Origin: Rhodosorus marinus CCMP1338
Taxonomy: Eukaryota; Plantae; Rhodophyta
Assembly: GCA_029953675.1 (NCBI GenBank)
Contig: JAMWBK010000008.1
Coordinates: 186,001-250,000 of the forward strand
Length of the DNA: 64,000 nt
Direction: 5' to 3'
The position numbers and the translations under genes are program-made. The notes beneath the pieces are model-generated. The model saw nothing but the letters and a program-made list of their open reading frames with translations. It searched no databases and was not told where the DNA came from. Below, one piece after another: positions 9,165-50,927 of this stretch. How positions within the stretch are numbered: the first letter of the stretch is position 1; each line of letters opens with the position of its first letter.

Positions 9165-9195
9165 CGCTCCAGGCACGGCTGCGAGGTCGCCGCCT

Positions 9196-12273: not shown

Positions 12274-12388
12274 TTCATCTTCACGCCTTGCGTAGCGCTT
12301 CAGGCTATGCTAGTAAAGTCCAGCTAAAGCATCGTTTATTTACTTTGTTAGATACACGAAATGTTTACTTGATCTTTCAACGCCAAGT

Positions 12389-14599: not shown

Positions 14600-15629
14600 G
14601 CCATGTTCACAGAACCAAAAATTTGGAGTAGGAAAAAAAATTATAAAATTTCCGCTAAACTCTTTCTCCAAATTAGAACATTCTGAAAAGCCATAAAATT
14701 GTGTCGGTCAGCCTTAGCGCTGGTGCTTACGCTAGTGAGCTGCATTCACCCTTCAAAACTTCTCGCAATAGCGTAATAGCTGCGCTTTGATGTTGAACCA
14801 TTCAATCAGATGTTCGAGGCGCCAAGACCTTCATGAGTCCCTAGATATGTTTTTTCCCTATCGGGGGATGTGGGTTTTTCATTCTCCGATTAAGACAATC
14901 TCATTCAACTTCAGTTTCCATATGGGCCTATAGCTTCTTAAGACCACCCCCAGGACCCTTTACCAAATGTTCAATCACTAAATGGAACAATAAATTTTAT
15001 AAAAAAAATATAATTTTTTATATTCCTCCTATGCCCGAACACATGCACCATCTTCTATTTTTGGTATCGGCATTCAGTTGCGAGATAATAAGCCTACCCT
15101 GAGGTATGTAGGGGGGAGAGCAGTGGTCAAGGAGGTCGATTTATTGACGTGTCAGGCGTAACCGCAAGATTTGCTGGGCAGCTGCACCTAGCTTTGCAGA
15201 GGGTCGAGCTTGAACCCCGAGGCTGATAGTCCACAATTTCTGGGGACGGCTTGTGACGAGTCGATTGAAACTCTCAAGCAGAAGTACAAATCTATAGAAT
15301 CGGAATCACACGTTCATGTTCCCGGCAAAATTTAGGGACTGCGAGGCTCATGATTTGGATAGGTGAGTCTGAATGCACAGTTGCGGGTTTCTCGAACGAA
15401 CGAATGGTTCGTTTGCGGGTTTCTGGGGTAACTGTGCTATGACTAGGATATGCGAATCTTAACGCACTGCAAGAGCGCATGATTACGACTATATAAAGAG
15501 TGGAAGAACGTGGTTCTCTGCATTGGCCACGGCGCAGTGTAGGCAAGTTGCATATTTGTGAATATTGCAAGAAATAGAGGTGAATAGAGCCAGTGAGTTT
15601 TTTGGGGGAGAAATTTGCAAGTCGACAAG

Positions 15630-16235
15630 ATGCAGACGAGATGGTTTCGTTTGATGTTCGCGAGTTGTGCGGTACTGCTTTCGCTGGTCGTTGGGGGACG
15701 TGGGGCGAATTGCAAGTATTCGTCCCCCTTAAATTGTTACACGAGCCAAGAAAACAGCAATTCGAAAGCGAGCATGGAATCGCTTAGCTACATGCTTACA
15801 AAGCAAGGAAGTAGCAATTTGCTCGGGTGGATGGGTATTACCCCAACTGCAAAAGGGCTGACGATCGATTTCTCGAGCATGTCAGGGGCGGTTTCTGTGG
15901 TGAAGGTTGGACTTTGGCCTTGCCACGCGATACCCGAGGAGAGCGGAATGTTCTACCAGATTTTTCGGACACCAGACACTAGTGATCCTTCCTCTGCTCA
16001 AGTCTCCCTCGACTGGGAGTGCGCACCTTTCGACTGCTGCTTTAACATGGCAGATGGTCAGATCACTATCGGACCCACTAATATGGTCTTGGCATCATGG
16101 TCCGCGAATGCATGTCTCGTTTCACAAGTCAAGATCGACATCAACGGCAAAGCCGAAAGGGTTGTCCCTTCGAACTGTGATTTAGTTAATGGCTATGCTG
16201 TATGTAAGGTCGCTTTTAAATGCGCTGCCAACTGA
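15630..16235 (+). CDS. Secreted Cys-rich protein, paralog of 12389..12994
   Basis: ATG at 15630, signal peptide. Shared motifs SPLNC, GWM.IT, GLWPCHA.P, P.DCCFN, T.GP.N.VL. Confidence 0.8.
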   Translation: MQTRWFRLMFASCAVLLSLVVGGRGANCKYSSPLNCYTSQENSNSKASMESLSYMLTKQGSSNLLGWMGITPTAKGLTIDFSSMSGAVSVVKVGLWPCHAIPEESGMFYQIFRTPDTSDPSSAQVSLDWECAPFDCCFNMADGQITIGPTNMVLASWSANACLVSQVKIDINGKAERVVPSNCDLVNGYAVCKVAFKCAAN

Positions 16236-16704
16236 AATCTCTTCACTTCGCCGTCTTCGAGATTGACTCGACGCTGAGATGAGATGACGTTGCCTATAGC
16301 CCCTGCTGTACTATTTACAACCAAAGTGGTCAAACGATATGACCTGAAAATAAACGAACTACTTTTAGACGTGTTGCGAAATCCGGACTTTTCTACCGCA
16401 GGACCTCGGGTAATTCGATGGGATGCAGGTTGGTACTGGGGTTGAACGAATCTTCCGCGGGAGCAAGGAGGATACGTGGCAAAAGCATTCAAAACAATGG
16501 AAAATCACAAGTCATAAAGAAACAGAGAGCATGGAATACGCAATCGTGGCCTCTCTTGGCAATGCCTACTGCAGTCAAGCACTGGCTCTATTCCTAATAG
16601 GAAAGGTCAGGTTAATCCCTCCGCGGGACCTCATGCCGGGTAGTCCCTGGCCAAACTGCTACATGTTCAACGGGGCTAGCACGTCCCTCGTTCGCCTTCT
16701 TAAA

Positions 16705-18155
16705 AACCAGTAAATACCGGCTTTACTCGCTTTACTGGCTTTGCTGGCTTGATTGGTTTTATTAGTTGGTTTTTACTACGCAAAGCGTGAAAAGGAACTA
16801 AGAACCAGGTAAGGAACCGTGCAAACCCAGGCGCCGATGGCGCGCCTCGGCAGGCATGCTGTTCGAATATCGCCACAGAGAGACACTTAAACGCCGCCAA
16901 AGTTCCAAATATTCAACAGGTGCTCGGGAAAACATTTCCGCAGCCACTCCAAACCCGACTTCTCCACGTGACCAAAGCTTTCCACAATGAAAGGCTGGAA
17001 CCGGGTGGGAGCGACCCTCCGCGCGAGGCAGACTGGCCATGCTCTCAGCATACCGTCGTTCCTTCACTCGGCGAAGGGCCGAAAAAGCAGCTGCTCCCCG
17101 GCGGCGGGCGGCAGCCGCGAGATGGGGGCTTGCCACCGGGCATGTAATCGCGAGGTCTACATATGCTGAGCGTCTGCAGGCAGCATCCGAGACAAGGAGA
17201 TCTGTGATACAGCGGGACGGTGCCGTGTCCGAGATCGATCTAGACAGTTCCGATTCTACCTCAACTGTATGCCCAACCCGAGTCAAACATTCGCTGAGAA
17301 TGTACTTGAAGCGAGTGTGACGACTCGTACGAAGACCTCTCAGCAGCCCACATGAACCTAAGAAGTGGTAACCACAAGCATCGATCCGACTCTCATATCC
17401 CTGACAGAAAGATGGCCGATTAAAGTGCCACGGAGCTTGTGACAAACCCAGATAGATCAACGAATTGTTTAATCGGAGACTGAGAGAAAAAACCCCGAGG
17501 GGAAAACAGACAAAGCGCCGCGTAGGTCGCGCCTCTCCAATAGCAACGCAGCGTTCATACGCCACAATAAGAAACTCAAGCGAGCAAACAAAGATTGATC
17601 CGTGCAGCAGAGCGGAACTGAAAGGCATCGAGACGGTGACCCAGTGATGAAGGCAACGTGGTTAGCCACAAGTGGGAAAGGTTGCGTCCCATGCCTTGGA
17701 GGCGAGCGGCGGTGGTAGACGGTGTGAGGGGATAGTTGAGCAAGATTGCGTGAGCGGCACTGTGTTGGCCCCAGGTGAGGCTATGTTGAATCACGTCAGT
17801 GCGCGAGCTCCACAATCGGCTCAGACCCGGGTAGTCGGCAACCGGTGACCCGGGCGTAGCTTCCCCCTCGTCGGCGAGTACTCTGTCGATGGGAGAGTCC
17901 TCGATCGCCTCAGTTCGTCCCCGCAAGAGCTCCTTCCAGGAGGGAAATCGGAATCGGCTCTCGTCCGGTATGGCGTTGCACTTACTGAACGCCTGTTGCA
18001 AGGCATCATAGATACTCAAAAGCGGTGGCGGAAGGGTCACGGTGTGTTCCCTAGTCGGTGCTCTAGCCCAAAGGCAAGCACTTCGAATCCGAAAACTCAC
18101 CAAGTTGCGAAGCGCGATAGCCCACGGGCGAACGCCGCTGGAGCGGTTCCGTCTA
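16705..18155 (-). mobile_element. Diverged B subfamily (B2) 3' fragment with a nested family C 3' end at 17459-17591
   Basis: RLE peptide RIDACGYHFLGSC..YVDLAITCP. Degenerate (AGTAAAGCC)n tail at 16705-16760. The C 3' UTR interrupts it. Confidence 0.8.
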
Positions 18156-18156
18156 A

Positions 18157-20089
18157 CGTCACCTGCGCATGGCGGTGTCCAGCTTCTTCGATACGGAGAG
18201 GCGACTTGTGCTGACTTCGCGCTACAAGACAGAGCTGCAGCGGTTGGGGATTTTGGAGGGCTCTGCTTCCAGCACCACTTCCAGCGAGAGTGAGGCAGGG
18301 GAGCAGACCGAGGGCATGGCGGTGGAGGACGCCCAGGTTACTTTGCTGAAGCCCGCGGGATCCGTTCCGCGAGCCTCGCGGAGTGGGCGGCTCACGACTT
18401 TGGTGCGGATAGGAGGTAAGAGAGCGAGGACCGACTCCCCCGGGTCTAAGGGGGAGAAGCACGATTAGCGCTCCAGGCACGGCTGCGAGGTCGCCGCCTA
18501 TGGATCTACAGTCTTAGTCCTGAATCTACAGTCTTATGTCCTGAAGGAGGGCGGAGACTGGGGCATTTTTTGGCGTACGCGTTCTCGGAGTTGGCTCCGG
18601 CGGTGGATTTCTTTGGAAGGAGGCTCGCTTCCCCTCCGTGGGGGCATTCCCCCAGTCGTCCTCCCTCGTGGAGACCTTCTAGTAGCTGGAACCATTCTCG
18701 ATTTCATCTTCACGAGCCTGGCTCGTAACATTCGGGACACGGTCATTTGGGTTTTTCTGGGGGTTATGCCGCGCCTGATTCTGGCCCCCATTCACACATC
18801 GGAGCGCAGATGGCTAGTACGAGACCGAATGACCCTGTTCTTGAAGGGAGACTTCGAAGAACTAAAGCGCAGCTATTTGGCGTCGTCAGCACCATCCGCC
18901 CGTCGGACTCGGCATGGCACAGTGTCGCCCGTGCCGGCTCGAGTACAGAAATTGGTAGCAGTGGGCGATTTAAGTCGAGCGGCGCGGGTTTTGGAGGGCC
19001 AGGCGCCTGTCCTCCCCTACGATGATAGTCTCGCCCAGACGGTGTCGTCTTTGTTCCCGAGTCCGACGTGGACTTGTCCCCTGAATTCGAGGTATTCTTG
19101 GACCGTCCGGAGTTGGCCAGGTTTCGCATCGATCTGACCCTCAGTGAGTCTGACCTGGAGGATTTGCTTCGTACCTCGCGTCGGGGACGCTGTCCCGGAC
19201 CCTCCGGACTAAGAAAAAAGCTATTGCAGGCCCTGAGCCAGCCTGGCCAGATCGCGCTTCTGAGGATCCTTAACAAGTTGTTCCAGGGCGTATCGGGTGC
19301 GTCTGCGCCATGGGAACATCTCCGGCAGGCACAGCTTTGCTTGCTCACGAAACCTGACCACCAGCCGGCCCACCCTCGTCTCCGGCCGATCGGGACGGTG
19401 GAGAGCCTACGGAAGTTAGCCGGGAGGTGGCTATGCCAGGGATGTGAGAGCCGGATTGACGCTTGTGGCTACCACTTCCTGGGTTCCTGCGGACTGTTGC
19501 GAGGTCTCCGTACGAGGCGTCACACTCGCCTCCAGTACATCCTCAGCGAATTTTTGACTCGGATAGGGCATACGGTTGAGGTTGAGTCGGAACTGCCCAG
19601 ATCAATCTCGGACTCTGCACCGCCCCGTTGTATAGCCGATCTCCTCGTCTCCGACGCTGCTGCCAGACGCTCAACATATGTGGACCTTGCGATTACCTGC
19701 CCCGTGGCCAGCGCCCACCTCACCGCAGCCGCCCGCCGCCGGGGGGCCGCGGCTTCAGCCCTTCGAAGAGTTGAGGAACGACAGTATGCTGAGAGCATGG
19801 CCAGTCTGCCTTGCGCTGAGGGTCGCTCTCACCGGTTCCAGCCATTCATTGTGGAAAGCTTTGGTCACGTGGATAAGTCGGGTTTAGAGTGGTTGCGGAA
19901 ATGTTTTTCTGAGCATCCTACTGAATATTTGGCGCTCTTGAGGCGTTTAAGTGTCTCCCTTTGGCGATATTCCAGCGACATGCTTTCCGAGGCGCGCCAT
20001 CGGCGCCTGGGGTTGCATGCTTCCCTCCCTAGTTATTAGTTCATCTTCACGCCTTGCGTAGCGCTTCAGGCTATGCTAGTAAAGTCCAG
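18157..20089 (+). mobile_element. Family B copy, 5'-truncated, with in-frame RT deletion
   Basis: Near-identical to B1 from the ORF1 end onward. LCQ joins GCESRID at 19439. Also has a frameshift and a short duplication at the ORF2 start. Confidence 0.9.
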
Positions 20090-20139
20090 TCCATCTTATA
20101 TCGCTCAGTTCTAGGCTCCGGGGCAGCAAAAAAAAAAAT

Positions 20140-23100
20140 GCTTGCAGCTGTCCCGCAGAAACTCCTGTGCCATCGGTCCAGTCCGCCCAAATGTTTCTAT
20201 TGCAATTGGGATGAACTTGTCATCCGGGTGTTCTATCGTCATCGCCTCCTTGTAGTGCGCTTTCTTCCACCTCTCTGCAAATCTTGCTGCATATCCACTC
20301 TCCCCTTCACTACCTCAGATATTCCCTTGCAAAGGAGACACAACCGTCACGTCAAGCGCATACCGTTGCAATGTCCTCGGATGCGTAGCAATGATGTCTG
20401 GCCGTAGCCCGTAGTTTTCAAACTACTTCTCTAGCTCCTGCTCGATGTCCAGAAAGTTCCACATGATCAGCCACCTTGCGATCTCCGTGCATATCTCGTC
20501 ATGCCTACGTTGCCTCAGGCCAGTCGACGTGGGGCAATGATGAAAGCGTTGTACTCCATTTGCTCCGTGTTTACCACGGCATCGAGTACATTTTTCCGTA
20601 GTCCGCAGCCCTGGAATCGGTAGCCCCAGTAGTTGTCGGATTGCCACCTGCATTTCGGTCGAGCTCAGATTTTTTCGGCCCCAACGTAGGCAGTTCGCGC
20701 AGCCAGACTCCCGATCCAGAGCCCGCCGCGGACCTGATTCGAGCGCGATGTTCGCCAGAGATGCGCGGATTGTTAACCAGGCGTTGGATTGCTGAATGGT
20801 TTGCCTCCAGAGAGAGATTTTGTTGTGTAGAACCATTATTCCAATCGCCACAGTCTTCTGGGGCGTCTCCTGGGGGGTTTTCCGTCGTCTTCTGCAGGGT
20901 GGCTAGTCTTCTGATCCGGGGCGGAGTTTCGGGGCGCAGCCTGCGTTGTATCGCTCGAGCGGATGATTTTATCTGGTCTGCAACGTGTTCTGCGGACCAT
21001 TGTAGTCGTGTCGCGGTTTTCGTAGCCGGATTTCTGTCTGTACAAACCTGCCTCTGCAGCTCAGCGAAGTAAGGCCAGTCGCCTGTCTTGCTTCGAAAGG
21101 TATTTGTCCAAGCCGAGTAGTAAGCGATAGGCTGGATACGCCGTCGAGTAGCGAACCCCAATCCACCCCACCGGCAAGTCACCGCAATCTGTTTCCAGAT
21201 GTGTCCCAGGTGCTCCTCGTCCTCCATGGCAGAGGTAGCAAGGCCTCCGAGCAAGCGTTTCAGCGCAGTACCCGAACAATGCTACCTGTGCGTTAAGTTC
21301 ATGTTGCGGTGGCTGTGTTATTTCCTTGATGAGCCTTTCGTGCTTATTTTGAAGCGCACGGCACTCGTGCTCGATATATTCCCGGTTTCCTATCGGGATC
21401 GAATGGATAGTGGCGCCTTCTCGGGTGACATGTATGCCAGGTATCTCGCGATTGATGACTCGCGCCGTCGTCAAGGCTCGGCCGAAGAGCGTGCATTTGT
21501 TGAGTTGTAGGCGGGCCCCAAGAGCTGGGAGCATAGTTCGGCTCCAGGCTAGTGCTTGCTTCAGTTCCTGCAGGGGTCCCACGATCGTAATATCGTCATG
21601 GATAGCGACAATCGTTAGATCGGAGAACTTTGTTCGCAGAGCTTTTAGGAACGGTGCGAGGGCTAGTGCATGTAGCACCGGCCCAAGAGGGTCTCCCTGT
21701 TGTACTCCCGTAGCTGCTTGGAGCGTCAGTCGTGAGTGCTCCGTTTGGTTCTCTCCAGGTGCAGAGCGCCAGCCGCAAAGCGTCGGCGAGTCCACTGCGT
21801 CGCTTCCATAGCCAAGTCTGTAAACCCCCGCAAGCTCCGGAAAGTGCTGGTCCACGAGTTTCTTGGCGAGGCGTCGATCAATCGTGTTGAATGCATTCTC
21901 GAGGTCAAGCCTAAGTGCCACCGCGTCTGGTTCACATGACAGATGGGCGTGAATCGCGCGAAGTGAGCGTTCGCATCCGCTACTGACTCCGATCCCTAGT
22001 TTTAATGGCACCAGGAGCGTGCGGTCCCTGTCGATCACCGCGCGAAGGGTCCATTGAGTCGCCACTTTTCGCAGAACTTCAGGGACGCCGATGGGCCGAA
22101 CGCCTGGGTTTTCCTGGGGAGCCGATTCCTTCGGTGGCTTCGCGAATGGTAGTAATCTGCTGCTACGCAGGGCACGCGTCAGCGGAGAGGGAAACTTCTC
22201 CGGAGCTGTCGCTAGTTGTCGCAGTACGCGGATCAAAGCCACTTGCGTCTGTTGATTGGCGCCGTGGAGATGTTCCGCGCGCATTCCACTGGGGCCTGGG
22301 CTCTTGCCCTGCGGAAGACGTGCCACAATCGACAGGAGGCCCTCATCAGCGGCTTTTGTGGCATCCCATCGGCTCTTAAGGGTCGTGTTGTAAGTGTTGT
22401 GCAGTGATTCCAGGGCCTCCGCCACCTCATCTGGTAAGTCACCTGCCGCAGGTTCTGGGAAGAGTCCTTGGAGTTGGCGCCAGGTAGTCTCAGTGAAGGG
22501 AGCCATTTCCGTTGCCTGTAGTCGACGAGCAGCGTCCGAGAGGCGACCGAGATGTGCCAGTTTCAGGGCTTGTTTCTGGCGTCCTAAAGCTTGGCGGCGA
22601 GTCGCTTCGGTTCCCGGTGGGGCAGTGTTTTGCTGCAGTAGGGACGCCCTGTCTTGAAGCGGTCCACACCGTATCGAATTCTCCTTCGAGCACATGTGTG
22701 ACCTGAATACCGATGTCAAGTGCACAACGTCCTAGCACCAGGCCTGGAAGTCCGACAAGAAGTTTCTCCTAGGCTAGCGTTGGCGGGTGCAGCTGTGTTC
22801 ATGGAAATCTCAAGAGCTGCACGAAGAAGGCGGCTCCAGGTATTGACGTGGGCACGGGGCACAAGGCGCCGTGTGGGCACCGGGCAGTGTGTTAGGCGTG
22901 TCCAATGACTGCCTCCTGTCGTAACTTGGTCAACGAAGTCGGTCCACCGTTTGAGCCAGGCTTGAAGATCCGAGAAGAACAGAGGCTCGTCGCGTCTTCG
23001 TTTGATTCCCCTTTGTCTGCTGGGCATTATTGCGTACGTGTTTCCTGGCTGTCCTGTGTGTGCATCGCGTGATGGGTGGCAGTGTGGTCGGCCTGGGGTG

Positions 23101-24742: not shown

Positions 24743-25081
24743 GCCGCCGGGGGGGCAGCCGCTTCGGCGCTGCGTCGAGTGAAGGAACGGTGGTATGCTG
24801 AGAGTATGGCCAGTCGCCTTGCGCTGAGGGTCGCTCCCACGGGTTCCAGGCTTTGGTCACGTGGAGAAGTCGGGTTTGGAGTGGTTGCGGAAAGGTTTCA
24901 CTGTGCATCCTACCCAATACTTGGAACTCTTATGCTGTTTAAGTGTTTCCCTGTGGCGATATTCTAGCAGCATGCTTGCCGAGGCGCGCCATCGGCGTCT
25001 GGGTTTGCCTGCTTCCCTACCTAGTTATTCGTTCCTTTTCACGCCTTGCGTAGCGCTTTAGGCTATGCTAATAAAACCACC
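24743..25081 (+). mobile_element. B2 3' fragment inserted in the 16-mer, apparent TSD AACGTAAC
   Basis: KERWYAESMAS..EARHRRLG plus B-type 3' UTR. AACGTAAC at 24734-24741 and 25082-25089. Confidence 0.75.
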
Positions 25082-25118
25082 AACGTAACACCAGGTCAAG
25101 CACCAGACTAGCATATCT

Positions 25119-28100
25119 CTAAAGCCAGGGCTTTCCGTCTACGGTGTCGTTGCCCTTCCCAGCGTATATGGTTCCGTCGTGGCCGCCTCCAGTTATGATC
25201 ACGTCGTCTCCGTCCCCCCCCAGAAGGCGATCATTCCCGTTACCGGTCACTAGCTTGTCATCTCCAGGGTCTCCACCAACGGTATTGTTGCCCTCAAGGT
25301 CCCTCAAATAGTCATCTCCAGCTCCTCCGTAAAGAAAATCGTCACCATAACCGCCGTCCATAAGGTCGTCGTCGTCGCCTGGGTCGAACCTCCCACTCTC
25401 AGAATTGCCATACATTCGGTCATTCCCGCTGTCACCGTACATGGCGTCATTTCCAAGGTTTCCTTTCATGATATCGTTTCCCAGGCTTCCATGCATATGG
25501 TCGTCACCGTTGCCGCCGTGCATTTGGTCATCCTCATAGCCGCCTTCCAGAGTATCATCTCCGTCACCTCCGAAGATCTTGTCATTACCTGCACCTCCCT
25601 TGATGACGTCTGCCTTCTTCCCTCCTGTAATATGGTCATCCCCTTCATCGCCGCGCACCCTGTTCTTCCCACTAACGACGCTGATTCTGTCATTTCCATC
25701 GCCTCCGTAGATAGAATCGTTACCAAAGCCACCGATCAGGCGATCGTCTCCAGAGCCTCCCCTGATGGAGTTCTTCACGCCACCGCCCGCGATGATCTTA
25801 TCGGAACCGGCGTCACCAGAAATCCAATCGTTTCCAAACCCTCCTTCGATGTTGTCATCACCATATCCGCCGAACGCCGTATCTGACCCGTCCCCGAGAT
25901 AAATTTTATCATCTCCCCCGTCGCCGCGGACTAGGTCGCTACCCGATCCACCCCAGATCTTGTCCGCTCTGTCGCCTCCATGGATCGTATCATCACCTGC
26001 CAGGCCGTAGATCCAGTCCACGAACTCGGTACCCCTAATCACATCGTCCTTTGCAGTACCCCGGATGACGTTGACACAGTTCAGCTTAACCTCCATGGTC
26101 CGGACGATCAAATACCGACCATCCTCAGGGTCTCCCGTGACGGGCATCGCAAAATGACCGGTCGACACTCCAGCTTCACCGAAGAACGATCTCGCGGTCC
26201 AAGAATATCCAACAACTTCGTGGAAGATGCACAGCTTACTGTCACAGCAGTTCCTTCCAGCGACGATATCCTCGAGATTCAGAATGACAGTCCTCGCCGT
26301 CGCTTCCCGATCCACGTTGACTTCCTTTGTGTACAGCTCCCGACTATTTGGGATCCCACAGTTTTCGAAAACTCCAATTCGAATGCTCCTCCAGCTTTCG
26401 TTGTTTCCCATTTCGTAGTTGAGCTTCAAGGAAACTTTACCGCGCGATTTGTGAGTTGACGTACACATCCTCCCTCGTTGCCTACCTCCAGGATAGTAAG
26501 TGCCATCGCTGATCTTGTAACATGTTCTCCGGAAATTTATTGCTCGTTGGTTGGGCAGAAGTTCCTTTCGGCAATTAGAGAAGTTCTTGATTTTTGAGCC
26601 TCCAGTGGGGGCGCCACCTACAAAACGACTCATCTCTACTCCGTCTACAACGTCTCGGCCTTCATTCGGTTCCAAATTTCCATCTTGGCCGTGTCCCGTC
26701 GTGATGACATCGTTGCCCGGACCTCCCCCAAAACGGTCTATCCCGTCTCCGGCAACTATCCTGTCGTGTCCATCGCCACCTCCAAGGGTGTTGTTGCCTT
26801 CAAGGTCCTTTAGGTAGTCATTGCCCCCGTATCCAACCACGAGATCGTCCCCATAGCCGCCATCCATATGGTCGTCGTCGTCTTCGCTATTTTGGCTCGC
26901 GCCATCAGCCAGGCCAAACATTCGGTCATTCCCATCATTTCCGTACATTGTATCACTTCCCGTGCCACCATTCATGGTATCATCTCCGCGTCCGCCATGC
27001 ATAAGGTCGTCCCCGTGGCCACCGTGCATCTTGTCATCACCATCGGAGCCTACAAGAGTATCATCTCCATCATTTCCGTCCATCGTATCCCTACCGCTGC
27101 CCCCGATAATGAAGTCCGTCCTCTTCCCGCCGTCAATAATGTCATGCCCGTCCTCGCCGTACAACTTGTTATCTCCATTGGAGACTTTTATTCTGTCATT
27201 TCCGCTGCCTCCTTTGATAACGTCGTCGGACGTGCCACCGATCAGTACATCATCGCCAGCATCTCCGAAGATCCAGTTCCTCTGACCGCCTCCGGCTTTG
27301 ATCTTATCGGAACCTGGTCCACCAAGCATCTGATCGTTTCCTCCGCCTCCTCTGATGTTGTCATCGCCTTCTCCGCCATTTGCGAAATCGGAACCGTCAT
27401 CGAGATAAATTTTATCATGTCCCGCCTCGCCGCGAACATTGTCGTCGCCCGATCCACCCCAGATCTTGTCCGCTCTGTCACCGCCATAGATCACGTCATC
27501 ACCTCCCAAGCCGTAGATCCAGTCGACGAACTTGGTTCCCTTAATGACATCGTCCTTGTTCGTTCCCTTGATGACATTGACGCAGTTCAGCTTGACGTCC
27601 ATCGAGCGATATAGTGTGCTTCCTGAATAGCCTGGTCTCGGGACATCAATGTAACCCGTCTGCGCTCCAGCATCATCAAAGAACGATGTTGCTTCTTCCC
27701 CACCCTTGCCATGAACTTCGTGGTAGACACACAGCTTACTGTCACAGCAATTTGTCTGGGCCGGTATGTCCCTCAGGCACCAGACCACGCTTTTTGTTTT
27801 CTTGTTGGGACCCATTTTGATATATCTCGTGAACAGATTTTTCTTATTCGGGACCTGACAGTCTCCGAACACTCCAACTCGAATCGTCCGCCACTCCCCC
27901 ACCTTTTTGAACCGGTACTCCAGATTCAAGCACAATTCATCCTCCACCTTGATCGTTGAGCTACACATTGTTCCTACTGGCGACCCTACTGGGAAAAAAC
28001 CACTGCCAACGTGGATTTCATAACACCTCTTGCCAAAGCTTGTGTGGTGCTGGGAGGGCAGAAGTAGCTTCTTACAAGTCGAACTCCTTGCCCTGCTACT

Positions 28101-28184
28101 CTCAAAAGTTCTCACCCGTACGCCAACCACACAAGCCACAAGCGCCAGATGGAACACGACGAGCATCATCCCTTTTTCGGCCAT
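25119..28184 (-). CDS. Secreted RTX (hemolysin-type Ca-binding GGxGxD repeat) protein, 1021 aa, duplicated module
   Basis: N-terminal signal peptide. Dozens of GGxG(N/D)Dx(L/I/M) nonapeptides in two arrays, each preceded by a Cys-containing domain. Intronless ORF. Confidence 0.9.
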   Translation of the reverse strand: MAEKGMMLVVFHLALVACVVGVRVRTFESSRARSSTCKKLLLPSQHHTSFGKRCYEIHVGSGFFPVGSPVGTMCSSTIKVEDELCLNLEYRFKKVGEWRTIRVGVFGDCQVPNKKNLFTRYIKMGPNKKTKSVVWCLRDIPAQTNCCDSKLCVYHEVHGKGGEEATSFFDDAGAQTGYIDVPRPGYSGSTLYRSMDVKLNCVNVIKGTNKDDVIKGTKFVDWIYGLGGDDVIYGGDRADKIWGGSGDDNVRGEAGHDKIYLDDGSDFANGGEGDDNIRGGGGNDQMLGGPGSDKIKAGGGQRNWIFGDAGDDVLIGGTSDDVIKGGSGNDRIKVSNGDNKLYGEDGHDIIDGGKRTDFIIGGSGRDTMDGNDGDDTLVGSDGDDKMHGGHGDDLMHGGRGDDTMNGGTGSDTMYGNDGNDRMFGLADGASQNSEDDDDHMDGGYGDDLVVGYGGNDYLKDLEGNNTLGGGDGHDRIVAGDGIDRFGGGPGNDVITTGHGQDGNLEPNEGRDVVDGVEMSRFVGGAPTGGSKIKNFSNCRKELLPNQRAINFRRTCYKISDGTYYPGGRQRGRMCTSTHKSRGKVSLKLNYEMGNNESWRSIRIGVFENCGIPNSRELYTKEVNVDREATARTVILNLEDIVAGRNCCDSKLCIFHEVVGYSWTARSFFGEAGVSTGHFAMPVTGDPEDGRYLIVRTMEVKLNCVNVIRGTAKDDVIRGTEFVDWIYGLAGDDTIHGGDRADKIWGGSGSDLVRGDGGDDKIYLGDGSDTAFGGYGDDNIEGGFGNDWISGDAGSDKIIAGGGVKNSIRGGSGDDRLIGGFGNDSIYGGDGNDRISVVSGKNRVRGDEGDDHITGGKKADVIKGGAGNDKIFGGDGDDTLEGGYEDDQMHGGNGDDHMHGSLGNDIMKGNLGNDAMYGDSGNDRMYGNSESGRFDPGDDDDLMDGGYGDDFLYGGAGDDYLRDLEGNNTVGGDPGDDKLVTGNGNDRLLGGDGDDVIITGGGHDGTIYAGKGNDTVDGKPWL

Positions 28185-28586
28185 CGTGAATCGTCAATTC
28201 ACCCAGTTTCCCCGGAATCTCCTACCCACCTCCCTCCCCCGTCCTTCCGCCGGCGCCTCAGGATACGTGACAGAAGCCGACTCTCTGTAGACAGACGTCC
28301 ACCCTCTCGGTCTCAGCGACCTCCCAACCCCTTCAGCGCATCCCCCAATCCCACTTCCATTTCATCCCTCCTTCTAATGCATTCGTTGGATACTTCACCT
28401 TCAGATATCGGAACCGCGACACACCTTGCACCGCACGGAATCTTTTGCTTCCCCAAACCCCCCGCCCGGTTTTTTTATAGCCCCTTCTCCATTTCCACTT
28501 AAAAAACTTCGATTCATTCCATCCCAACCCCCTCTTCCTCCATCTCCCGAAAAAGGTAAAAACAATTCGTTCTTATACAAAGCATC

Positions 28587-28935
28587 AATTGTGTATATAG
28601 ACCGAGTAGTACTTTTCTCATTGAATGAATTGTTTATGTATGCAGAATAATATATCGGCGAAAAGGGAGCGGGTATTTTCGCTACACTGACTTTTCACTA
28701 CACTGTACCACCCCCCACCCCCCAGTACGCCTGAATGTGAATGAAGAAGGTTAGAAAAACCAATGTTTTGCTGAGCATCCTGTTGAATATTTGGAACTTT
28801 TGCGTCGTTTAAGCGTCTCTCTGTGGCGCTACTCGAGCAGCATGCTTGCTCAGGCGCGCCATAGGCGCCCAAGGCATGAATTGTGTATATAAACCGAGTA
28901 GTACTTTTCTCATTGAATGAATTGTTTATGTATGC
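28587..28935. repeat. 57-bp direct repeat pair flanking a segment with a B2 remnant
   Basis: 28587-28643 and 28879-28935 differ by one base. B2-like sequence lies at about 28780-28875. Confidence 0.85.
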
Positions 28936-29060
28936 CATTCGCGGTAAGGTTGCTATAGAGTTTTGCTCTACTCATTCATTCAACAAATTCATTCATTAAA
29001 CAAATTCACCCATTCAAGAGGAGCATGCTGTGACAAAGGAAATTCGCACTATTGGTGAAT

Positions 29061-30005
29061 CGCACGGATGACTTGCAAAACACCCTTTCTTGGGACTTGC
29101 ACTACGATGCCTACCGCCAACTTCTCGCGCAGATGGTCTCATCTTCCCCAGATCGCGTCCGCCTGCGGAGTCTTGGATGGTGTATCAGCTCACTGGGGCG
29201 CATGGCTGTCCCCGCTTTTCCGCCACTCACACTCACAGATTTCGAAGTGCGCACTTCTCTGCGTTTATACCTCGGCTTGCATCAGCCGCCCTAGCCTTCC
29301 GAGATGGGTTCACCGTCCCCTCTATGCTCTCAGAACGAATATACCGCGGATTTTGGCGCCCGTGTGCTCGCCAGCTGCCGCGCTGTGAACGGCCCCCAAA
29401 CCCGACGACATTACGCGGATCTTGAACCTGTTATACCGCGTTCTTTGACCTATCGCACGGCAAGCCGGTCTTGAAATAGAACATGAGTGGCCCCTGCCTG
29501 TCACAGACTACCAGAATGATGAAAGCCGGGTGGCTGACCTCGTGGTCATCTGTGACGATAGCCGCCGTACGACGTTCGTTGATCTTGTTGCTCCTAATCC
29601 TCAGGCTAGTCGATCTTTGCCGGCTGCGGAAGAGCGCCGTGGATTTGCCGCTGCCAATATGAGATGTCGCGGAGAGTTGAAATATGCGGGGGCCCTGTCT
29701 TCCCCAGGTAATGGTGCTTCGGCTCTAGCTCATCGCCTGGTACCTCTGTGGTCATTGAGTGCTTTGGGTCTCCGATTAAACCATTCGTTCGGGTTTATCG
29801 AGGGGATTCCTTTGGTTCTCGTTGGCTTCGGGAATTGTTCCTCGAACGCCCTGACAGTCTGTCCTCGTTGTTTACCCGTTTAAGTTTCTTGCCGTGGCGT
29901 ATGAACGCCGCTTTGATGTTGGAGGCGCGCGATCTTCGCCGCGCTTAGTCTTTTTTTTCCCCTACGCGTTTTTTTCTTTCAGCCTCCGATTAAACCAATT
30001 CGTTC
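29061..30005 (+). mobile_element. Family C 5'-truncated copy (RLE region), 10-bp TSD ATTGGTGAAT
   Basis: TSD at 29051-29060 and 30006-30015. VADLVVICDD..TFVDL motif. 3' end CCGATTAAACCAATTCGTTC. Confidence 0.85.
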
Positions 30006-30374: not shown

Positions 30375-31715
30375 TTGTTAGATCAGGGGTACCAAGCGAT
30401 GTGCTAGTGCCGAAGCACGAACACCAGGGGAAGACAAAGCCCCCGCGTATTTGATCTCTTTGCGTCGTCGCATACTGGCGGCGGCAGATCCACGGCGCTC
30501 CCCCGCAGCCGGGAGATAACGAATAGCTTGAGGATTAGGAACAGCAAGATCAACGTATGTGGTACGGCGGCTGTCGTCACAGGTGATCACCAGGTCGGCT
30601 ACACGGCGTTCATCATTTTGAAAGTCCGCGACGGGTAAAGGTTTTTCACGTTCGATTTCCAGACCGGCTTGCCGGACTATAGGCCGAAGTTCCCGGTATA
30701 ACAGGTTCAAGATCCGTGCATGGCGGCGGGTTCGAGCACCTTTCACCGCCGGGCAACTAGCGAGCAGGTGGGCGCCAAAATCTGCGTTATCTTCAGTCTG
30801 AGAGCAGAGAGGGCACGACGAACCCATCTCGTACGGCCAGGGGGGCTGATGTAAGCCGAGGTATAAGCGCAGTGAAGTACGCACTTCGAAATCCGACAGT
30901 GTGAGTGGCAGAAAGGCTGGTACGGTCATGAGCCACTGAGAGCTAATAACCCCTCCAAGACTACGTAGGCGGGCGTGAGCGCGAGAAGATGAGACCATCT
31001 GCGCGAGGAGTCGGCCATATGCAGCACGGTGCAAGTCCCAAGAGAGGATATTTTGCAGCGCATCCGTGCGTGCTTGAGCTCGGCTCCCAGCGCGCTGGGA
31101 ATCATCAGGAGGATCAACTGGAACTTCTTCTTCTGCGGCAACCACTGGGTCAATCTCCACTAGAACAGGTTCAGGCGCAGGACGAATCCCCGGGGCGGAG
31201 CCTCGAGAGCGGTCAAATACAGCTCGCCAGTCAGGAAGACGGGGTTGAACGGTTTCGGGGAGACTAGTACAGGAATTCAGGGCGGCTTGGAGCTCCAGAA
31301 ACAAGTCTTGGGCGCTTTCCGGTACGCAGGGAAGCAAGACACCCCGCGAGAGCCTCGCCATCAAATTGCGGAGCTTCGAGATACCCAAACTGCTCAAAGT
31401 GGGAAGCGCGGTTCCCCAGGCCACTACTGCGGCTGCGGGTTGGACCACAACACGGTTGCAGAGGCTCAGTCCCCCCAATCGCAATGGGAGGCCTACCTGG
31501 GCGCGCACAACATCACAGGTGGGTCGCGACAGAGCGCTCAGCTCCTCATCGAGAAAATACCCAAGGTCACGGAAACTTTCAGCATCCGCACGAGTGGCCA
31601 ACCACCGGCCCCAATGAGTTGGGAGTGAGCGGAGCCAATAGGTTAACCGCTGACTGCAACAATACCGAAACAACAACAACGAGCACTGGAGGAAGCCCGG
31701 AGGTAGAATCGGTGT
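30375..31715 (-). mobile_element. Family C internal fragment (RT C-terminus + RLE)
   Basis: RLTYWLRSLP..AQVGLPLRLGG, CPLC..HLLASC, VADLV..YVDLAVPNP. Homologous to but distinct from B ORF2. Confidence 0.85.
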
Positions 31716-31726: not shown

Positions 31727-34700
31727 TATTGGCTTTATTGGACTTTGCTGGACTTTACTGGACTTTACTAGCATAGCCTGAAGCGCTACGCAAGGCGTGA
31801 AGATGAACTAATAACTAGGGAGGGAAGCATGCAACCCCAGGCGCCGATGGCGCGCCTCGGAAAGCATGTCGCTGGAATATCGCCAAAGGGAGACACTTAA
31901 ACGCCTCAAGAGCGCCAAATATTCAGTAGGATGCTCAGCAAAACATTTCCGCAACCACTCTAAACCCGACTTATCCACGTGACCAAAGCTTTCCACAATG
32001 AATGGCTGGAACCGGTGAGAGCGACCCTCAGCGCAAGGCAGACTGGCCATGCTCTCAGCATACCGTCGTTCCTTAACTCTTCGAAGGGCTGAAGCCGCGG
32101 CCCCCCGGCGGCGGGCGGCTGCGATGAGGTGGGCGCTGGCCACGGGGCAGGTAATCGCAAGGTCCACATATGTTGAGCGTCTGGCAGCAGCGTCGGAGAC
32201 GAGGAGATCGGCTATACAACGGGGCGGTGCAGAGTCCGATATTGATCTGGGCAGTTCCGACTCAACCTCAACCGTATGCCCTATCCGAGTCAAAAATTCG
32301 CTGAGGATGTACTGGAGGCGAGTGTGACGCCTCGTACGGAGACCTCTCAACAGTCCGCAGCAACCCAGGAAGTGGTAGCCACAAGCGTCAATCCGGCTCT
32401 CACATCCCTGACAGAAAGACGGCCGATTAGAGTGCCACGGAGCCTGTGGCAAACCGAGATAGATCCGTGCGGCAGAACGGAACTGGAAAGCATCGAGACG
32501 ATGACTCAATGACGACGGCAGAGTGGTTAACCACAAGTGCGAGAGGTGGCCTCCCATGCCGCGGAGACGAGCGGCAGTGGTAGGCGGCGTGAGAGGAGAA
32601 TTGAGCATGACTGTGTGAGCGGCACTGTGTTGGCCCCAGGTGAGGCTATGTTGAATCACATCAGTGCGGGAGCTCCACAATCGGCTCAAACCCGGGTAGT
32701 CTGCAACAGGGGGCCCGGGGCTAGCCTCTCCGTCATCGGCAAGAACTCGGTCGAGGGGACAATCCTCAATCGCTTCAGCTCGTCCCCATAACAGCTCCCT
32801 CCAGGAACGAAAGCGGGACCGATTTGCGTCCGGCACGGCGTTGCACCTCCTGAACGCGTGTTGAAGACCATCATAAATTGTCAAAAGCGGGGGCGGCAGG
32901 CTCACTGGATCCTCGTTGGTCAAAGCTCGAGCCAAGAGGCAGGCACTTCGCATCTGGAAGGTCACCAACGTTCGCAGCGCGGTAGCCCAGGAGGCAACCG
33001 CCGCTGGCGAGCATACCAGCCCACGGTCTGCGACGCCGAATCCCCTAATCGCAACGGTAGAGCGATCTGTGCACGAATAAAGTCCCTGTCGGGAGCAGCT
33101 TCAAGATCGAGGGGCTCATCCAAGAGCGTTCCCCAGTGTTGCAGGGTCATTTCGTCGGCTTTAGCCGCGATCCACGAGCCCCAAGCTGGAGGCAGGCTGC
33201 GCAACCAGTAGTTGAGTCTGGGACCGGCACAAAAGCGGGAAAGCAAGCAGGCCGATTGCAGCATGCTGTGGGGTAGGTGCTCAATGGCGTCGGTGAGTTG
33301 CTTGTGCCGTGCCAAAACTCGCTCGCAGGATGCTTGGACAAAGTTGTCAGTCCCCAATCCGACGCCGTGGTGTTCGAACCCTTCACGTTCGCTGATTAGT
33401 CGCAGAGTGGGTGGCAGAGAGTTCAGCGAAACGTCCCTCGGGGGGAGAAAGCGACATTTTTCTGTTTCCACAGTCAAACCGACGCGACGTGCAATCGCTT
33501 CGATCGCGGTCAGTCCCCTAGCCAGGGTGTCAGGGGTGCCCAGCAATGTTACGTCATCGTGGTACGCGCAGATTCGAAGATCCGAGACCTCAGTCGAAAG
33601 ACGTAAAAGTACGAGCTGTAGGGCACAGGCATGAAGAAGAGGTCCGCAAGGGTCGCCTTGTTGGACGCCAGTATGTGCTTGAAAAACAGTGCCCTCCGTT
33701 GTCAAGTAGGGGAGGCTCTCGCCTCCGTAAATACCCGATAGAAACGGCCACGCCTCCGGAAACACACGTCGGAGCACCTCTAGCGCATGCGTCCGCGACA
33801 CGCTGTTGAATGCGTTCAGGAAATCAACCACCAAGACTCCCCACTCCGGCCTACTGGCGCGTTCTAGCTCGATCCCATGGGTGATCAGTTCGCAACCCCC
33901 AGAAAATCCCACCCCTACTTGCAAGGGCGCCATAAAAGCTGTGACGCGCTGGCGAAGGCGCTGGCATAGCCACCTCCCGGCTAACTTCCGTAGGCTCTCC
34001 ACCATCCCGATCGGCCGGAGACGCGGGTGGGCCGGCTGGTGGTCAGGTTTCGTGAGCAAGCAAAGCTGTGCCTGCCGGAGATGTTCCCATGGCGCGGACG
34101 CACCCGATTCGCCCTGGAACAACTTGTTAAGGATCCTCAGAAGCGCGCTCTGGCCAGGCTGGCTCAGGGCCTGCAATAGCTCTGTTCTTAGTCCGGAGGG
34201 TCCGGGACAGCGTCCCCGACGCGAGGTACGAAGCAAATCCTCCAGGTCAGACTCACTGAGCGTCAGATCGATGCGAAACCTGGCCAACTCCGGACGGTCC
34301 AAGAATACCTCGAATTCAGGGGACAAATCCACGTCGGACTCAGGGAACAAAGACGACACCGTCTGGGCGAGACTATCATCGTAGGGGAGGACAGGCGCCT
34401 GGCCCTCAAAACCCGCGCCGCTCGACTTAAATCGCCCACTGCTACCAATTTCTGTAGTCGAGCTGGCACGGGCGACACTGTGCCATGCCGAGTCCGACGG
34501 GCGGATGGTGCTGACGACGCCAAATAGCTGCGCTGTAGTACTTCGAAGTCTCCCTTCAAGAACAGGGCCAGTCGGTCTCGTACTCGCCATCTGCGCTCCG
34601 ATGTGTGAATGGGGGCCAGAATCAGGCGCGGCATGACCCCCAGAAAAACCCAAATGACTGTGTCCCGAATGTTGCGAGCCAGGCTCGTGAAGATGAAATC

Positions 34701-36546
34701 GAGAATGGTTCCAGCTACTAGAAGGTCTCCACGAGGAAGGACGACTGGGGGAATGCCCCCACGGAGGGGAAGCGAGCCTCCTTCCAAAGAAATCCACCGC
34801 CGGAGCCAACTCCGAAAACGCGTACGCCAAATGCCCCAGTCTCCGCCCTCCTTCAGGACATAAGACTGTAGATCCATAGGCTGCGACCTCGCAGCCGTGC
34901 CTGGAGCGCTAATCGTGCTTCTCCCCCTTAGACCCGGGGGAGTCGGTCCTCGCTCTCTTACCTCCTATCCGCACCAAAGTCGTGAGCCTCCCACTCCGCG
35001 AGGCTCGCGGAACGGATCCCGCGGGCTTCAGCAAAGTAACCTGGGCGTCCTCCACCGCTATGCCCTCAGTCTGCTCCCCTGCCTCACCACTCTCGCTGGA
35101 AGTAGTGCTGGAAGCAGAGCCCTCCAAAATCCCCACCCGCTGCAGCTCTGTCTTGTAGCGCGAAGTCAGCACAAGTCGCCTCTCCAGATCGAAGAAACTG
35201 GAAACCGCCATGCGCAGGTGACGAGGGCCCGACCGGAACCGCTCCAACAAGATCCTCTCAAGGCGCTGAATCCGTAGCCAATGGATCGCTGCCGCCTTCA
35301 CGCTGCTCTCATGCTCAGAGAGCCCTGCCGTTTCTCCCGGAGACAGGAAATTGCCCGAGAAACGGTCAAAATCGAAGTGCAAAACCACCTGCGGGTTGCA
35401 GCGCAGCCACCGGGCGCTCTCAGGCCACTGCTCGGTAGGCTTCGCCCGCAAGGCCTCCAGGTACTTGGCGGCGGTGGCGGAGACCAAAAACAGCACATCG
35501 CGGCCCTCATAGTTTGCGAAGAAGAAATCACCCCGGCTGCACCCTAACGATTCCGCAAAAGTGTCCCGGAAGTCTCGCATAGACGGAACCTGTCCTCGTG
35601 TAGTCTGGGGCCGGACATTTCGCACCCACAGAAATTGGAGAGTGGTCTCCACAGGTCCATCCTGAGGCTTGCGAGATGGTATGAAACGGAGCATAGCGGC
35701 CGTACGTGTGGCAGTGGTGCCCTTCCGCAAGACTGATGCGTACGAAGCGCCCCCCTTGCGGCCACCACGTGCCCCCGAAGTAGCTGGGAGCTGGTGACGA
35801 CCTGAGGGCTGGTCCAAGAGAGGGAAGTCCACAGCTGCAGTTTCCGCACAGTCACCACCACCATTGCCTCGAGTCCCCGAGCGCTGAAGCGCGTTTTGTC
35901 CCGGCCTGCCGCTCCCCAACGTCGTACTGTCCCGCGCAGAAGCAACAGCCCTCGCCTGTCCCGGGACAGGTTCATGTTGATTGACCGGATGTTGACTGCC
36001 TTCAGCCAACGCTGCCACTCTGGCGCAATTCAAATTCTCGTCCGAATTTGAATTTGACCTGGCCAGCAATCCCGATTCCAGCCCACCTAGCTTCTGGGTG
36101 AGCTGAGGGAGCACTCCACGATCACTCGCAGCCGTGATCAGGCTGGTGACAGCGAAGATAAGTGAACGCGCCTGGGTGCCAGAAGCGCCTTCCAAGTCAA
36201 CCTCGGAAGAAAACGTGCCGCAGCTGAGGCGAACACGGAGTCCCCCACCTGGCAGTGCCTCCTTGGGAGGAGGCTCCGTCGAGTGCGGAGATATCCCTAC
36301 CATCCTGAGGGAATCCGCCAAGGAAACGTTGCACCACCAATATGAAACCGCACCGAGAGAATAATCGACCAAACCCAACCCAAATAGGAAAGGCCCCGCA
36401 ACTCACCCACCCGGAAGACAGAAGTAGTTGCAAATGCAAACGACGCCCCGCGGAAAATCGAGGGGAAGGCGTACCAGAGGAAGCGCTTCCCGTAAACGAA
36501 CACGCTCGCGACCGAAAAAGAAACAAAACCCCAATCCTCGACAACT
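31727..36546 (-). mobile_element. Family B full-length copy B2x (ORF2 frameshifted)
   Basis: ORF1 34909..36378 is open. ORF2 is split over 34877/34830/32968 frames by single-base losses in G runs. Tandem 10-bp tail at the 3' end. Confidence 0.92.
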
Positions 36547-36597: not shown

Positions 36598-37747
36598 CTA
36601 GCATTGGACTTTACTAGCATAGCCTGAAGCGCTACGCAAGGCGTGAAGATGAACTAATAACTAGGGAGGGAAGCATGCAACCCCAGGCGCCGATGGCGCG
36701 CCTCGGAAAGCATGTCGCTGGAATATCGCCAAAGGGAGACACTTAAACGCCTCAAGAGCGCCAAATATTCAGTAGGATGCTCAGCAAAACATTTCCGCAA
36801 CCACTCTAAACCCGACTTATCCACGTGACCAAAGCTTTCCACAATGAATGGCTGGAACCGGTGAGAGCGACCCTCAGCGCAAGGCAGACTGGCCATGCTC
36901 TCAGCATACCGTCGTTCCTTAACTCTTCGAAGGGCTGAAGCCGCGGCCCCCCGGCGGCGGGCGGCTGCGATGAGGTGGGCGCTGGCCACGGGGCAGGTAA
37001 TCGCAAGGTCCACATATGTTGAGCGTCTGGCAGCAGCGTCGGAGACGAGGAGATCGGCTATACAACGGGGCGGTGCAGAGTCCGATATTGATCTGGGCAG
37101 TTCCGACTCAACCTCAACCGTATGCCCTATCCGAGTCAAAAATTCGCTGAGGATGTACTGGAGGCGAGTGTGACGCCTCGTACGGAGACCTCTCAACAGT
37201 CCGCAGCAACCCAGGAAGTGGTAGCCACAAGCGTCAATCCGGCTCTCACATCCCTGACAGAAAGACGGCCGATTAGAGTGCCACGGAGCCTGTGGCAAAC
37301 CGAGATAGATCCGTGCGGCAGAACGGAACTGGAAAGCATCGAGACGATGACTCAATGACGACGGTAGAGTGGTTAACCACAAGTGCGAGAGGTGGCCTCC
37401 CATGCCGCGGAGACGAGCGGCAGTGGTAGGCGGCGTGAGAGGAGAATTGAGCATGACTGTGTGAGCGGCACTGTGTTGGCCCCAGGTGAGGCTATGTTGA
37501 ATCACATCAGTGCGGGAGCTCCACAATCGGCTCAAACCCGGGTAGTCTGCAACAGGTGACCCGGGGCTAGCCTCTCCGTCATCGGCAAGAACTCGGTCGA
37601 GGGGACAATCCTCAATCGCTTCAGCTCGTCCCCATAACAGCTCCCTCCAGGAACGAAAGCGGGACCGATTTGCGTCCGGCACGGCGTTGCACCTCCTGAA
37701 CGCGTGTTGAAGATCATCATAAATTGTCAAAAGCGGGGGCGGCAGGA
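36598..37747 (-). mobile_element. Family B 5'-truncated copy B3, head-to-tail with B2x
   Basis: Near-identical to 31760-32900. The 5' end joins a short B2-like piece at 37748-37806. Confidence 0.9.
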
Positions 37748-39718: not shown

Positions 39719-39919
39719 ATTGTTGCCAGATTTCGATTTCGCAAAAAAGCCAAGGTTCTGCCCCCGCTCCACTACGCTGTCCCAAAGTGATACCCAACTA
39801 ATCAAAGCCCATTACTAGCTTCTTTCTATGTATTCCACAACCTCCCGAGACCCCTTTATCTCCACCGTCAGGCTGGGGGGAAAGTGTACGGCTAGGTTAG
39901 CTTGGGTAAAAAGTATGCA

Positions 39920-50741: not shown

Positions 50742-50927
50742 AGCTGAACTATCTCAGCTTGGTTTTGCACTTTGTTTCACAGTTGCTACAAAACTTCAGT
50801 AAATCCTAAGCTCGAGCGCATAGTCGTTGATAAATGCAATAGTCCTGCTAACGTCACTGAGTTTGCTCGCAAACGCTCGGATTTGTTGACAAATGGTCCC
50901 TTTGTATTTATCTTGTTGCTTTCATCT

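Follow-up and report, generated by a model that had tools for sequence, protein, structure and literature searches.

An alga-specific cysteine-rich domain joined to a bacterial-type RTX repeat module in a predicted secreted protein of the red alga Rhodosorus marinus

Bacteria are rich in RTX arrays, and the RTX beta-roll is a textbook fold tied to type I secretion and to Ca2+-driven folding outside the cell: in bacterial RTX proteins the C-terminus leaves the cell first, and folding starts at a C-terminal cap. Among eukaryotes, InterPro holds scattered PF00353 entries of uncertain quality. RTX substrates of type I secretion end in a C-terminal signal of ~60 residues that is not cleaved, and their genes are linked to those for an ATP-binding cassette (ABC) exporter and a membrane-fusion protein (MFP) (Linhartova et al. 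2010, PMC3034196). Here we analyzed a 64,000-nt stretch of DNA (the window; positions 186,001 to 250,000 of contig JAMWBK010000008.1, GenBank assembly GCA_029953675.1) from the red alga Rhodosorus marinus CCMP1338, in which an open reading frame (ORF) at 25119-28184 encodes a protein with two RTX blocks, each preceded by a cysteine-rich (Cys) domain (Table 1). This Cys-RTX protein is a mosaic of an alga-specific domain and a bacterial-type repeat module, and goes beyond a plain bacterial gene in a eukaryote. In the ORF listing it starts with ATG and stays open over 3066 nt without internal stops; in the GenBank assembly it is one called gene, for a hypothetical protein without a name. RTX beta-rolls themselves are known; what is new is one that appears to be re-routed via the eukaryotic secretory pathway and is fused to a Cys domain that is previously undescribed.

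With the bacterial PF00353 beta-rolls (serralysin-type proteases, family I.3 lipases, AlgE R-modules, and RTX proteins of S-layers and adhesins) the algal protein shares the GGxGxDxUx motif and the 9-residue period; both are presumably Ca2+-dependent and extracellular, the algal beta-roll being a predicted one. Unlike bacterial RTX proteins, however, it is nuclear-encoded, carries an N-terminal signal of the endoplasmic reticulum (ER) type as judged by prediction, and has no ABC or MFP genes nearby. Moreover, its array stands C-terminal to a presumably disulfide-rich domain, an arrangement unlikely in a type I substrate, and its translocation would run from the N- to the C-terminus, whereas the bacterial proteins leave the cell C-terminus first.

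The repeat module was identified by several measures. PF00353 (HemolysinCabind) was the sole Pfam family matched by the protein, at E=1.5e-100 and 328.8 bits against a cut-off of 23, in 21 matched stretches. Exact GxxGxD cores number 40, and each block comprises ~33 in-register nonapeptides (consecutive in block 1, with three 1-residue register slips only), across which the Asp/Gly ligand positions are kept. The AlphaFold2 (AF2) model of block 1, with a predicted local distance difference test score (pLDDT) of 92-97, has a strand every nine residues. Its significant Foldseek matches were solved RTX beta-rolls (prob 1.00) and a Ca2+-dependent beta-helical antifreeze region, with no other, and PDB sequence matches of the RTX block were to RTX repeat domains only. 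On the strength of these models, the RTX blocks very probably form Ca2+ beta-rolls. The initial annotation of this DNA had proposed an RTX repeat protein in a eukaryote, and that proposal is borne out by the intact ORF, the Pfam match and the position of the gene in an algal nuclear contig.

The Cys domain spans ~170 aa, with eight Cys columns that are invariant in all five complete copies, including those of the motif NCC(D/E)xxLC. The Cys column pairs 64/117 and 157/181 (alignment numbering) are gained or lost together; therefore disulfides are expected, which argues for an oxidising folding compartment. AF2 modelling of the domain from a six-sequence alignment gave an all-beta fold (pLDDT 76; predicted template-modelling score, pTM, 0.75), and in a 499-residue model of unit 1 (pLDDT 79, pTM 0.71) a strand at aa 194-206 (…VKLNCVNVIK) links this sandwich to the RTX array. 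The domain had no Pfam match and no PDB profile match, even at E<=10. Foldseek likewise returned nothing significant, the best hits being E=0.016 at a TM score of ~0.3 in the PDB and E=0.004 in BFVD; CBM56, CBM21, C2, PDE-delta, NEAT and ester-bond adhesin sandwiches were considered as its fold family and rejected as non-significant.

An exhaustive HMMER profile scan of 1.84 billion representative proteins with the Cys domain returned four matches, three of them true relatives, with no relative in prokaryotes or in other sequenced eukaryotes; the fourth match (P0124), an RCC1-like repeat protein, was a false positive. Cys-domain profile scores to family members were E=1e-24 and 2e-09. Word-index searches with the Cys-domain alignments found nothing and carry no weight, since they also missed P0121, a family member in the same genome, although it is part of the collection searched and of the query alignment. 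In JGI metagenomes, a scan with one of the Cys alignments (A1) gave 86 pattern matches, none of which was confirmed. The sole JGI match (L005) of a 39-nt degenerate pattern for the Cys-RTX junction lay in an unrelated bacterial ORF and was discarded as a chance match; this junction scan did not recover a known positive (L003), so its negative weighs little. As far as sequence searches reach, the Cys domain has so far been found only in this algal lineage.

The Cys domain and the RTX array are present twice in tandem. The two halves of the protein (aa 35-515 and 537-1018) share 55% identity over 484 residues (E=8e-156), with 43% identity between the Cys copies, 61.5% between the RTX blocks, and 66% nucleotide identity over the aligned codons. 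In the DNA, the duplication is seen as a 300-nt repeat (D15; 25728-26027 and 27234-27533) that is 76% identical at a spacing of 1506 nt. The protein-level identity and this repeat confirm the tandem duplication of a Cys domain plus RTX array that had been noticed initially. Furthermore, a 21-mer has an exact copy at 26229-26249 and a copy with a single mismatch at 27729-27749, where none would be expected by chance; on the coding strand it reads CCDSKLC (aa 646-652 and 146-152), the best-conserved motif of the Cys domain. One of the two positions first given for this DNA repeat, 27730, is correct, while the other, near 26190, was off by ~40 nt.

At the N-terminus, the maximal 12-aa Kyte-Doolittle mean is 2.86 (aa 9-20), and together with the (-3,-1) heuristic this hydrophobicity supports the signal peptide proposed in the initial annotation. 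Equivalent hydrophobic N-termini occur in the related sequences P0121, P0125 and ORF 760-888 of contig L004 (described below). From these sequence features, secretion of the Cys-RTX protein is quite likely. At the other end, the ~13 residues that follow the last repeat core do not make a C-terminal type I signal. A Pfam scan of 20 window ORFs (10 of at least 250 aa and 10 of ~200-320 aa) showed no ABC exporter or membrane-fusion gene; apart from ORFs with no match, they encode retroelement proteins, FAD_binding_4, Aa_trans and GSDH/Big_5.

The protein belongs to a small family. The R. marinus paralogue P0121 (KAJ8903302.1, hypothetical protein NDN08_004411, ‘Calcium-binding protein’ in UniRef; 692 aa), encoded on contig 7 (2.2 Mb), consists like the window protein of a signal and two Cys-plus-RTX units. 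A one-unit member of 525/540 aa (P0123/P0125) comes from an MMETSP culture transcriptome and was also found in IMG sample 3300017118; its contig of 2361 nt includes untranslated regions (UTRs) of ~350-400 nt at each end, and therefore at least one family member is expressed. The N-terminus of P0125 is hydrophobic (MYNAWRVFVVFGGLWMLC…), and its C-terminus (…GKDTLNGKPLNT before the stop) shares the GKP ending of the window protein. An 89-aa fragment, P0122, comes from the Logan contig L004 (SRR32518362, 1183 nt), whose stretch 760-1171 holds a relative of the Cys domain that is 53% identical to window copy 1. This copy is degraded: an intact signal peptide and SNCEKINLPN are followed by a TAG where a Gln is conserved, by a shift of frame and by a premature stop, and thus members of the family are also being lost.

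Within this family, the Cys domains of P0121 and P0125 are 23-30% identical to the window copies, and their RTX arrays are shorter than those of the window protein (125-346 aa). Cys copies are closer within a protein (43% for the window protein and 37% for P0121) than across the window protein and P0121 (23-28%); therefore, either the duplications were independent or the units were homogenised. On the other hand, the Cys-RTX junction NC[VI]N[VLI]IxGTxxDD…FVDxIYG is kept in all copies, and thus the fusion of the two modules predates the divergence of the family. The family-defining combination of the junction (N/D)C(V/I)N(V/L/I)IxGT with a hydrophobic N-terminus holds for both window copies, both P0121 copies and the P0123/P0125 copy.

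How did bacterial-type repeats come to stand in an algal protein? Bacterial contamination or a chimeric assembly, by which a bacterial gene would have been placed in an algal contig, might be suspected, since few algal cultures are axenic and the RTX part has a bacterial look. The gene, however, lies at ~211 kb in a contig of 2,117,290 bp assembled from Oxford Nanopore (ONT) and HiFi data, with eukaryotic retroelements on both sides within 40-900 nt, and the copies of long interspersed nuclear elements (LINEs) that flank it are 97-99% identical to copies beside host genes elsewhere in the window. Its GC content (0.527) and third-position GC (GC3, 0.568) are in line with those of its neighbours (0.51-0.52 and 0.53-0.63), and its Gly/Asp codons are indistinguishable from theirs. 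Furthermore, the protein has a eukaryote-type signal and a Cys domain without a match in the prokaryotic proteins searched, a second Mb-scale contig carries a paralogue, and a culture transcriptome contains a homologue. Contamination or chimerism, named at the outset as what would overturn the finding, is therefore very unlikely given a position ~200 kb inside the contig, host-like composition, the paralogue on another contig and the transcribed relative, and this is almost certainly a real nuclear gene of R. marinus. The genome of this unicellular marine red alga is pseudo-chromosomal in its nuclear assembly (31 Mb, 13 large contigs, 15% repeats), with a mean of ~3 introns per gene (PMC10250338). 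The initial annotation had pointed to an intronless gene; the single exon stands, but it is weak evidence, with the host neighbours Aa_trans and FAD_binding_4 also being single ORFs. Retrogene origin was rejected, there being no poly(A) tract after the stop codon.

For the source of the repeats, block 1 of the window protein scored 247 bits (42% identity) against a cyanobacterial array (Pseudanabaenaceae) versus 153-173 bits (34-41% identity) against the algal paralogues; for the two window blocks together the values were 247-253 and 153-198 bits, and block-by-block BLAST gave no algal monophyly of the RTX blocks. A donor search over 185,579 prokaryotic species genomes yielded nine loci at 29-48% identity, in cyanobacteria, Actinomycetota, Pseudomonadota and Myxococcota. 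Since most of the similarity comes from the repeat consensus, neither a donor nor a clade can be assigned. The whole-protein search was flooded with RTX repeats and is silent on the non-RTX part: it gave 7259 matches via the repeats, of which the best covered ~30% of the query with 43-44% identity. Its best 120 matches were prokaryotic or metagenomic, save one suspicious ostracod entry. In the literature library searched, no paper dealt with RTX proteins of Rhodosorus, of red algae or of other eukaryotes. Alternatively, the arrays may be an old, vertically inherited eukaryotic or red-algal module, or a de novo Gly/Asp repeat that converged on the beta-roll. In favour of such a non-bacterial origin are the higher scores of the window blocks against the cyanobacterial array than against the algal paralogues, the spread of the 29-48% matches over at least four bacterial phyla with no identifiable donor, the fully host-like composition of the gene, the N-terminal half of each unit, which is clearly an algal invention, and the readiness with which repeat arrays expand and homogenise. 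It is nevertheless rather unlikely, given a profile match of E=1e-100, 42-44% identity over ~300 aa to bacterial arrays, the prokaryotic or metagenomic nature of the best 120 of 7259 matches but for that ostracod, a literature in which no eukaryotic RTX family was found, and the restriction of the Cys-RTX family to one narrow lineage. We lean towards a bacterial origin of the RTX module. The horizontal acquisition suggested initially would thus be plausible for one half of each unit only, the bacterial-looking RTX array, and not for the algal-only Cys domain; the RTX blocks carry no phylogenetic signal.

As for function, a bacterial-type repeat block brings to mind a cytolysin of the RTX type, or else a secreted protease, lipase or other enzyme, directed against bacteria or grazers. 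NCBIfam models for RTX hemolysin, EhxA-type, serralysin and esterase proteins are among the matches, and the best PDB matches by sequence and by fold are RTX domains of a bacterial toxin. The NCBIfam matches, however, run via the repeats only, at 94-264 bits against curated cut-offs of 500-2000, and the protein has no pore-forming segment, acylation region, metzincin or lipase domain, its non-RTX part being an orphan beta-sandwich; a toxin or enzyme is thus very unlikely. Among the models rejected, RTX hemolysin (NF033943) reached 263.7 bits against a cut-off of 1000, with its best stretch in the repeats (profile positions 660-797 of 930); the protease, lipase and esterase models NF035945 (93.6 versus 500), NF053766 (111 versus 940) and NF050046 (99 versus 670) matched through repeats only; and the enterohemolysin, ZapA and polyurethane-esterase models were likewise repeat-only matches below cut-off. 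With the RTX pore-forming toxins (hemolysin, leukotoxin, adenylate-cyclase toxin) the repeat block alone is shared, whereas a hydrophobic pore-forming domain, an acylation segment and an enzymatic domain are lacking; these toxins are the best PDB matches because they offer the longest solved RTX arrays. The closest functional analogy is with giant RTX adhesins, built of a spacer and a terminal binding domain, and with RTX S-layer proteins. Region IV of the Marinomonas primoryensis ice-binding adhesin (3p4g) was matched by Foldseek at E=5e-4 and shares a rigid, Ca2+-stabilised beta-solenoid. That adhesin differs in repeat type and size, in being bacterial and secreted by type I, and in having no Cys-rich sandwich, so that the likeness is one of architecture only.

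On balance we slightly favour the picture of a lineage-restricted, secreted matrix or adhesion protein built of units of a Cys sandwich and a Ca2+ beta-roll; by analogy, a scaffold or adhesive role is conceivable at a lower level of confidence. The protein would enter the ER co-translationally, N-terminus first, by a cleavable signal peptide; the beta-sandwich would gain four to five disulfides in the oxidising lumen; and the RTX array would fold from N to C on lumenal Ca2+, with the sandwich-proximal strand as nucleus. Seawater holds ~10 mM Ca2+, and the Ca2+-loaded array would stay rigid there. The mature protein may be a soluble rod at the cell surface or in the mucilage that acts as scaffold or adhesin; its beta-sandwich end would probably bind a ligand (possibly a glycan), with the beta-rolls as rigid spacers. 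In its history, the RTX module would have been taken from bacteria long ago, its type I signal swapped for an ER signal, and the module fused with the algal domain ahead of the diversification of the family; an internal tandem duplication of ~1.5 kb would have given the two-unit layout. A more specific version, which we hold only tentatively and consider doubtful, is that a captured bacterial beta-roll was re-engineered for eukaryotic secretion: the C-terminal type I signal and folding cap would have been lost, the N-terminal disulfide-rich sandwich would serve as folding nucleus for an array that folds N-to-C in the Ca2+-rich ER, and the module would have been duplicated into a lineage-specific cell-surface block, possibly with linked GSDH/Big_5 proteins.

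Several points weigh against the secreted matrix or adhesion protein: i) the signal peptide was called by heuristics only, and its 17-residue hydrophobic stretch could be a signal anchor; ii) the beta-sandwich is without an informative structural neighbour, so that ligand binding is a guess; iii) the bacterial origin is drawn from taxonomic distribution and background knowledge, not from a tree, and the RTX blocks show as much similarity to bacterial arrays as to the algal paralogues; iv) a LINE end ~36 nt past the stop codon and debris within the upstream 1 kb could impair regulation; v) a transcript is known for the relative P0123/P0125, not for the window copy. The last two bear on another reading, in which the window copy is a decaying or silenced gene and other family members are the functional ones. 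In keeping with it, the gene is a 4-kb island with a LINE tail just beyond its stop and, ~600 nt upstream, a LINE fragment flanked by a duplication of ~60 nt; the related L004 is visibly degraded (TAG at Gln, frameshift, premature stop); and the expression seen is that of the P0123/P0125 relative. We nonetheless consider silencing or decay improbable, given 3066 nt kept open, eight invariant Cys in both domains, regular repeats, and an ORF still intact since the insertion of the downstream LINE, which is old (87% identity versus 97-99% among active copies). In addition, dN/dS between the halves is 0.385 (Cys 0.34, RTX 0.39; Nei-Gojobori), indicating from sequence comparison purifying selection on both halves since the duplication, an estimate weakened by a dS of ~0.9-1.4, near saturation.

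The surroundings of the gene are rich in retroelements, as had been noted initially and is confirmed by ORFs with RVT_1 at 9196-12273, 21061-22725 and 32962-34830 and by a copia-like gag and integrase at 48799-50212. A young, apparently active LINE-like non-LTR (long terminal repeat) family of ~4.85 kb, with an ORF1 of 563 aa and an ORF2 of 1025 aa that carries RVT_1, makes up a large share of the 64-kb window. The LINE end downstream of the gene belongs to repeat family D6 and shares 87% identity with the 3' ends at 12092-12317 and 19858-20083. Upstream, LINE debris lies 0.6-1.7 kb from the gene, which thus forms an island between LINE fragments; inverted repeats there (I19, I23) match 30384-31070, and the ORFs at 29052-29883 are similar to the C-terminal end of the one at 30378-31679. 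A direct repeat of ~60 nt (…catacataaacaattcattcaatgagaaaagtactactcgg…) at 28580-28940, ~400-750 nt upstream of the RTX start codon, brackets a ~240-nt insert resembling a LINE 3' end, and may be a long target-site duplication or a local duplication of the promoter region. In the copia-like LTR fragment (- strand), Pol_BBD and an integrase core (rve) come after the zinc knuckle of gag (zf-CCHC). Two host genes, each a single ORF, mark the region as algal nuclear DNA: a FAD_binding_4 oxidoreductase (38165-39805, - strand) and an Aa_trans amino-acid transporter (54264-55655, - strand).

Table 1. Cys-RTX gene, its domains and LINE-like elements of the window (positions in window coordinates; aa, residues of the Cys-RTX protein)
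Feature	Position	Strand	Remarks
Complete single-exon coding sequence, 1021 aa + stop	25119-28184	-	Stop codon 25119-25121; Cys-RTX protein
Predicted ER signal peptide, aa 1-21	28122-28184	-	MAEKG / MMLVVFHLALVACVV / G; likely cleavage between VVG and VR
Cys-rich beta-sandwich (predicted), copy 1, aa ~34-203	27576-28085	-	CCDSKLC at 27729-27749
RTX block 1, aa 204-514, ~33 nonapeptides	26643-27575	-	Predicted Ca2+-binding beta-roll
Linker, unit 1 to unit 2, aa 515-536	26577-26642	-	Unaligned between halves; low repeat-motif score
Cys-rich beta-sandwich (predicted), copy 2, aa 537-705	26070-26576	-	CCDSKLC at 26229-26249
RTX block 2, aa 706-1021	25122-26069	-	Reaches ~13 residues from the C-terminus (…GKGNDTVDGKPWL before the stop)
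Old 5'-truncated LINE 3' end	24850-25082	+	Tail-to-tail with the gene; ends ~36 nt past the stop
Upstream retroelement debris	28560-29883		D6-like fragment ~28770-28870; degenerate ORFs 29052-29883
LINE-like copies	7473-12323; 31758-36545; ~43647-48106	+; -; -	97-99% identical
Truncated LINE copies, shared 3' end	36605-37746; 50927-51226; 19434-20090; 24850-25082		Many 5'-truncated

The window also contains a large single-exon gene for a 1362-aa protein with a glucose/sorbosone dehydrogenase-like (GSDH) beta-propeller and Big_5 domains, which are of the bacterial Ig-like kind (58184-62272, - strand), ~30 kb from the Cys-RTX gene, and a 323-aa GSDH fragment (1764-2735, + strand). On contig 7, a gene for a 1095-aa GSDH+Big_5+NPCBM protein (14885-18172 of locus L002, - strand) is 2.8 kb away from P0121. 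In this way, both Cys-RTX paralogues of R. marinus are linked to bacterial-looking GSDH/Big_5 extracellular genes; the GSDH parts are just 24% identical, and therefore no recent segmental duplication is involved.

With these data, a gene known as a hypothetical protein now has a domain map. The relevance of the finding lies mainly in the folding directionality of the beta-roll and in the cell-surface biology of red algae, and its impact is limited by the very small size of the family. If our reading is true, the beta-roll would work equally well when threaded N-terminus first via Sec61 into a Ca2+-rich lumen, and the Cys-RTX proteins would offer a natural system in which to study the directionality of beta-roll folding and its capping needs. 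It would also provide a well-anchored case of a prokaryote-type module recruited into an extracellular protein of a red alga.

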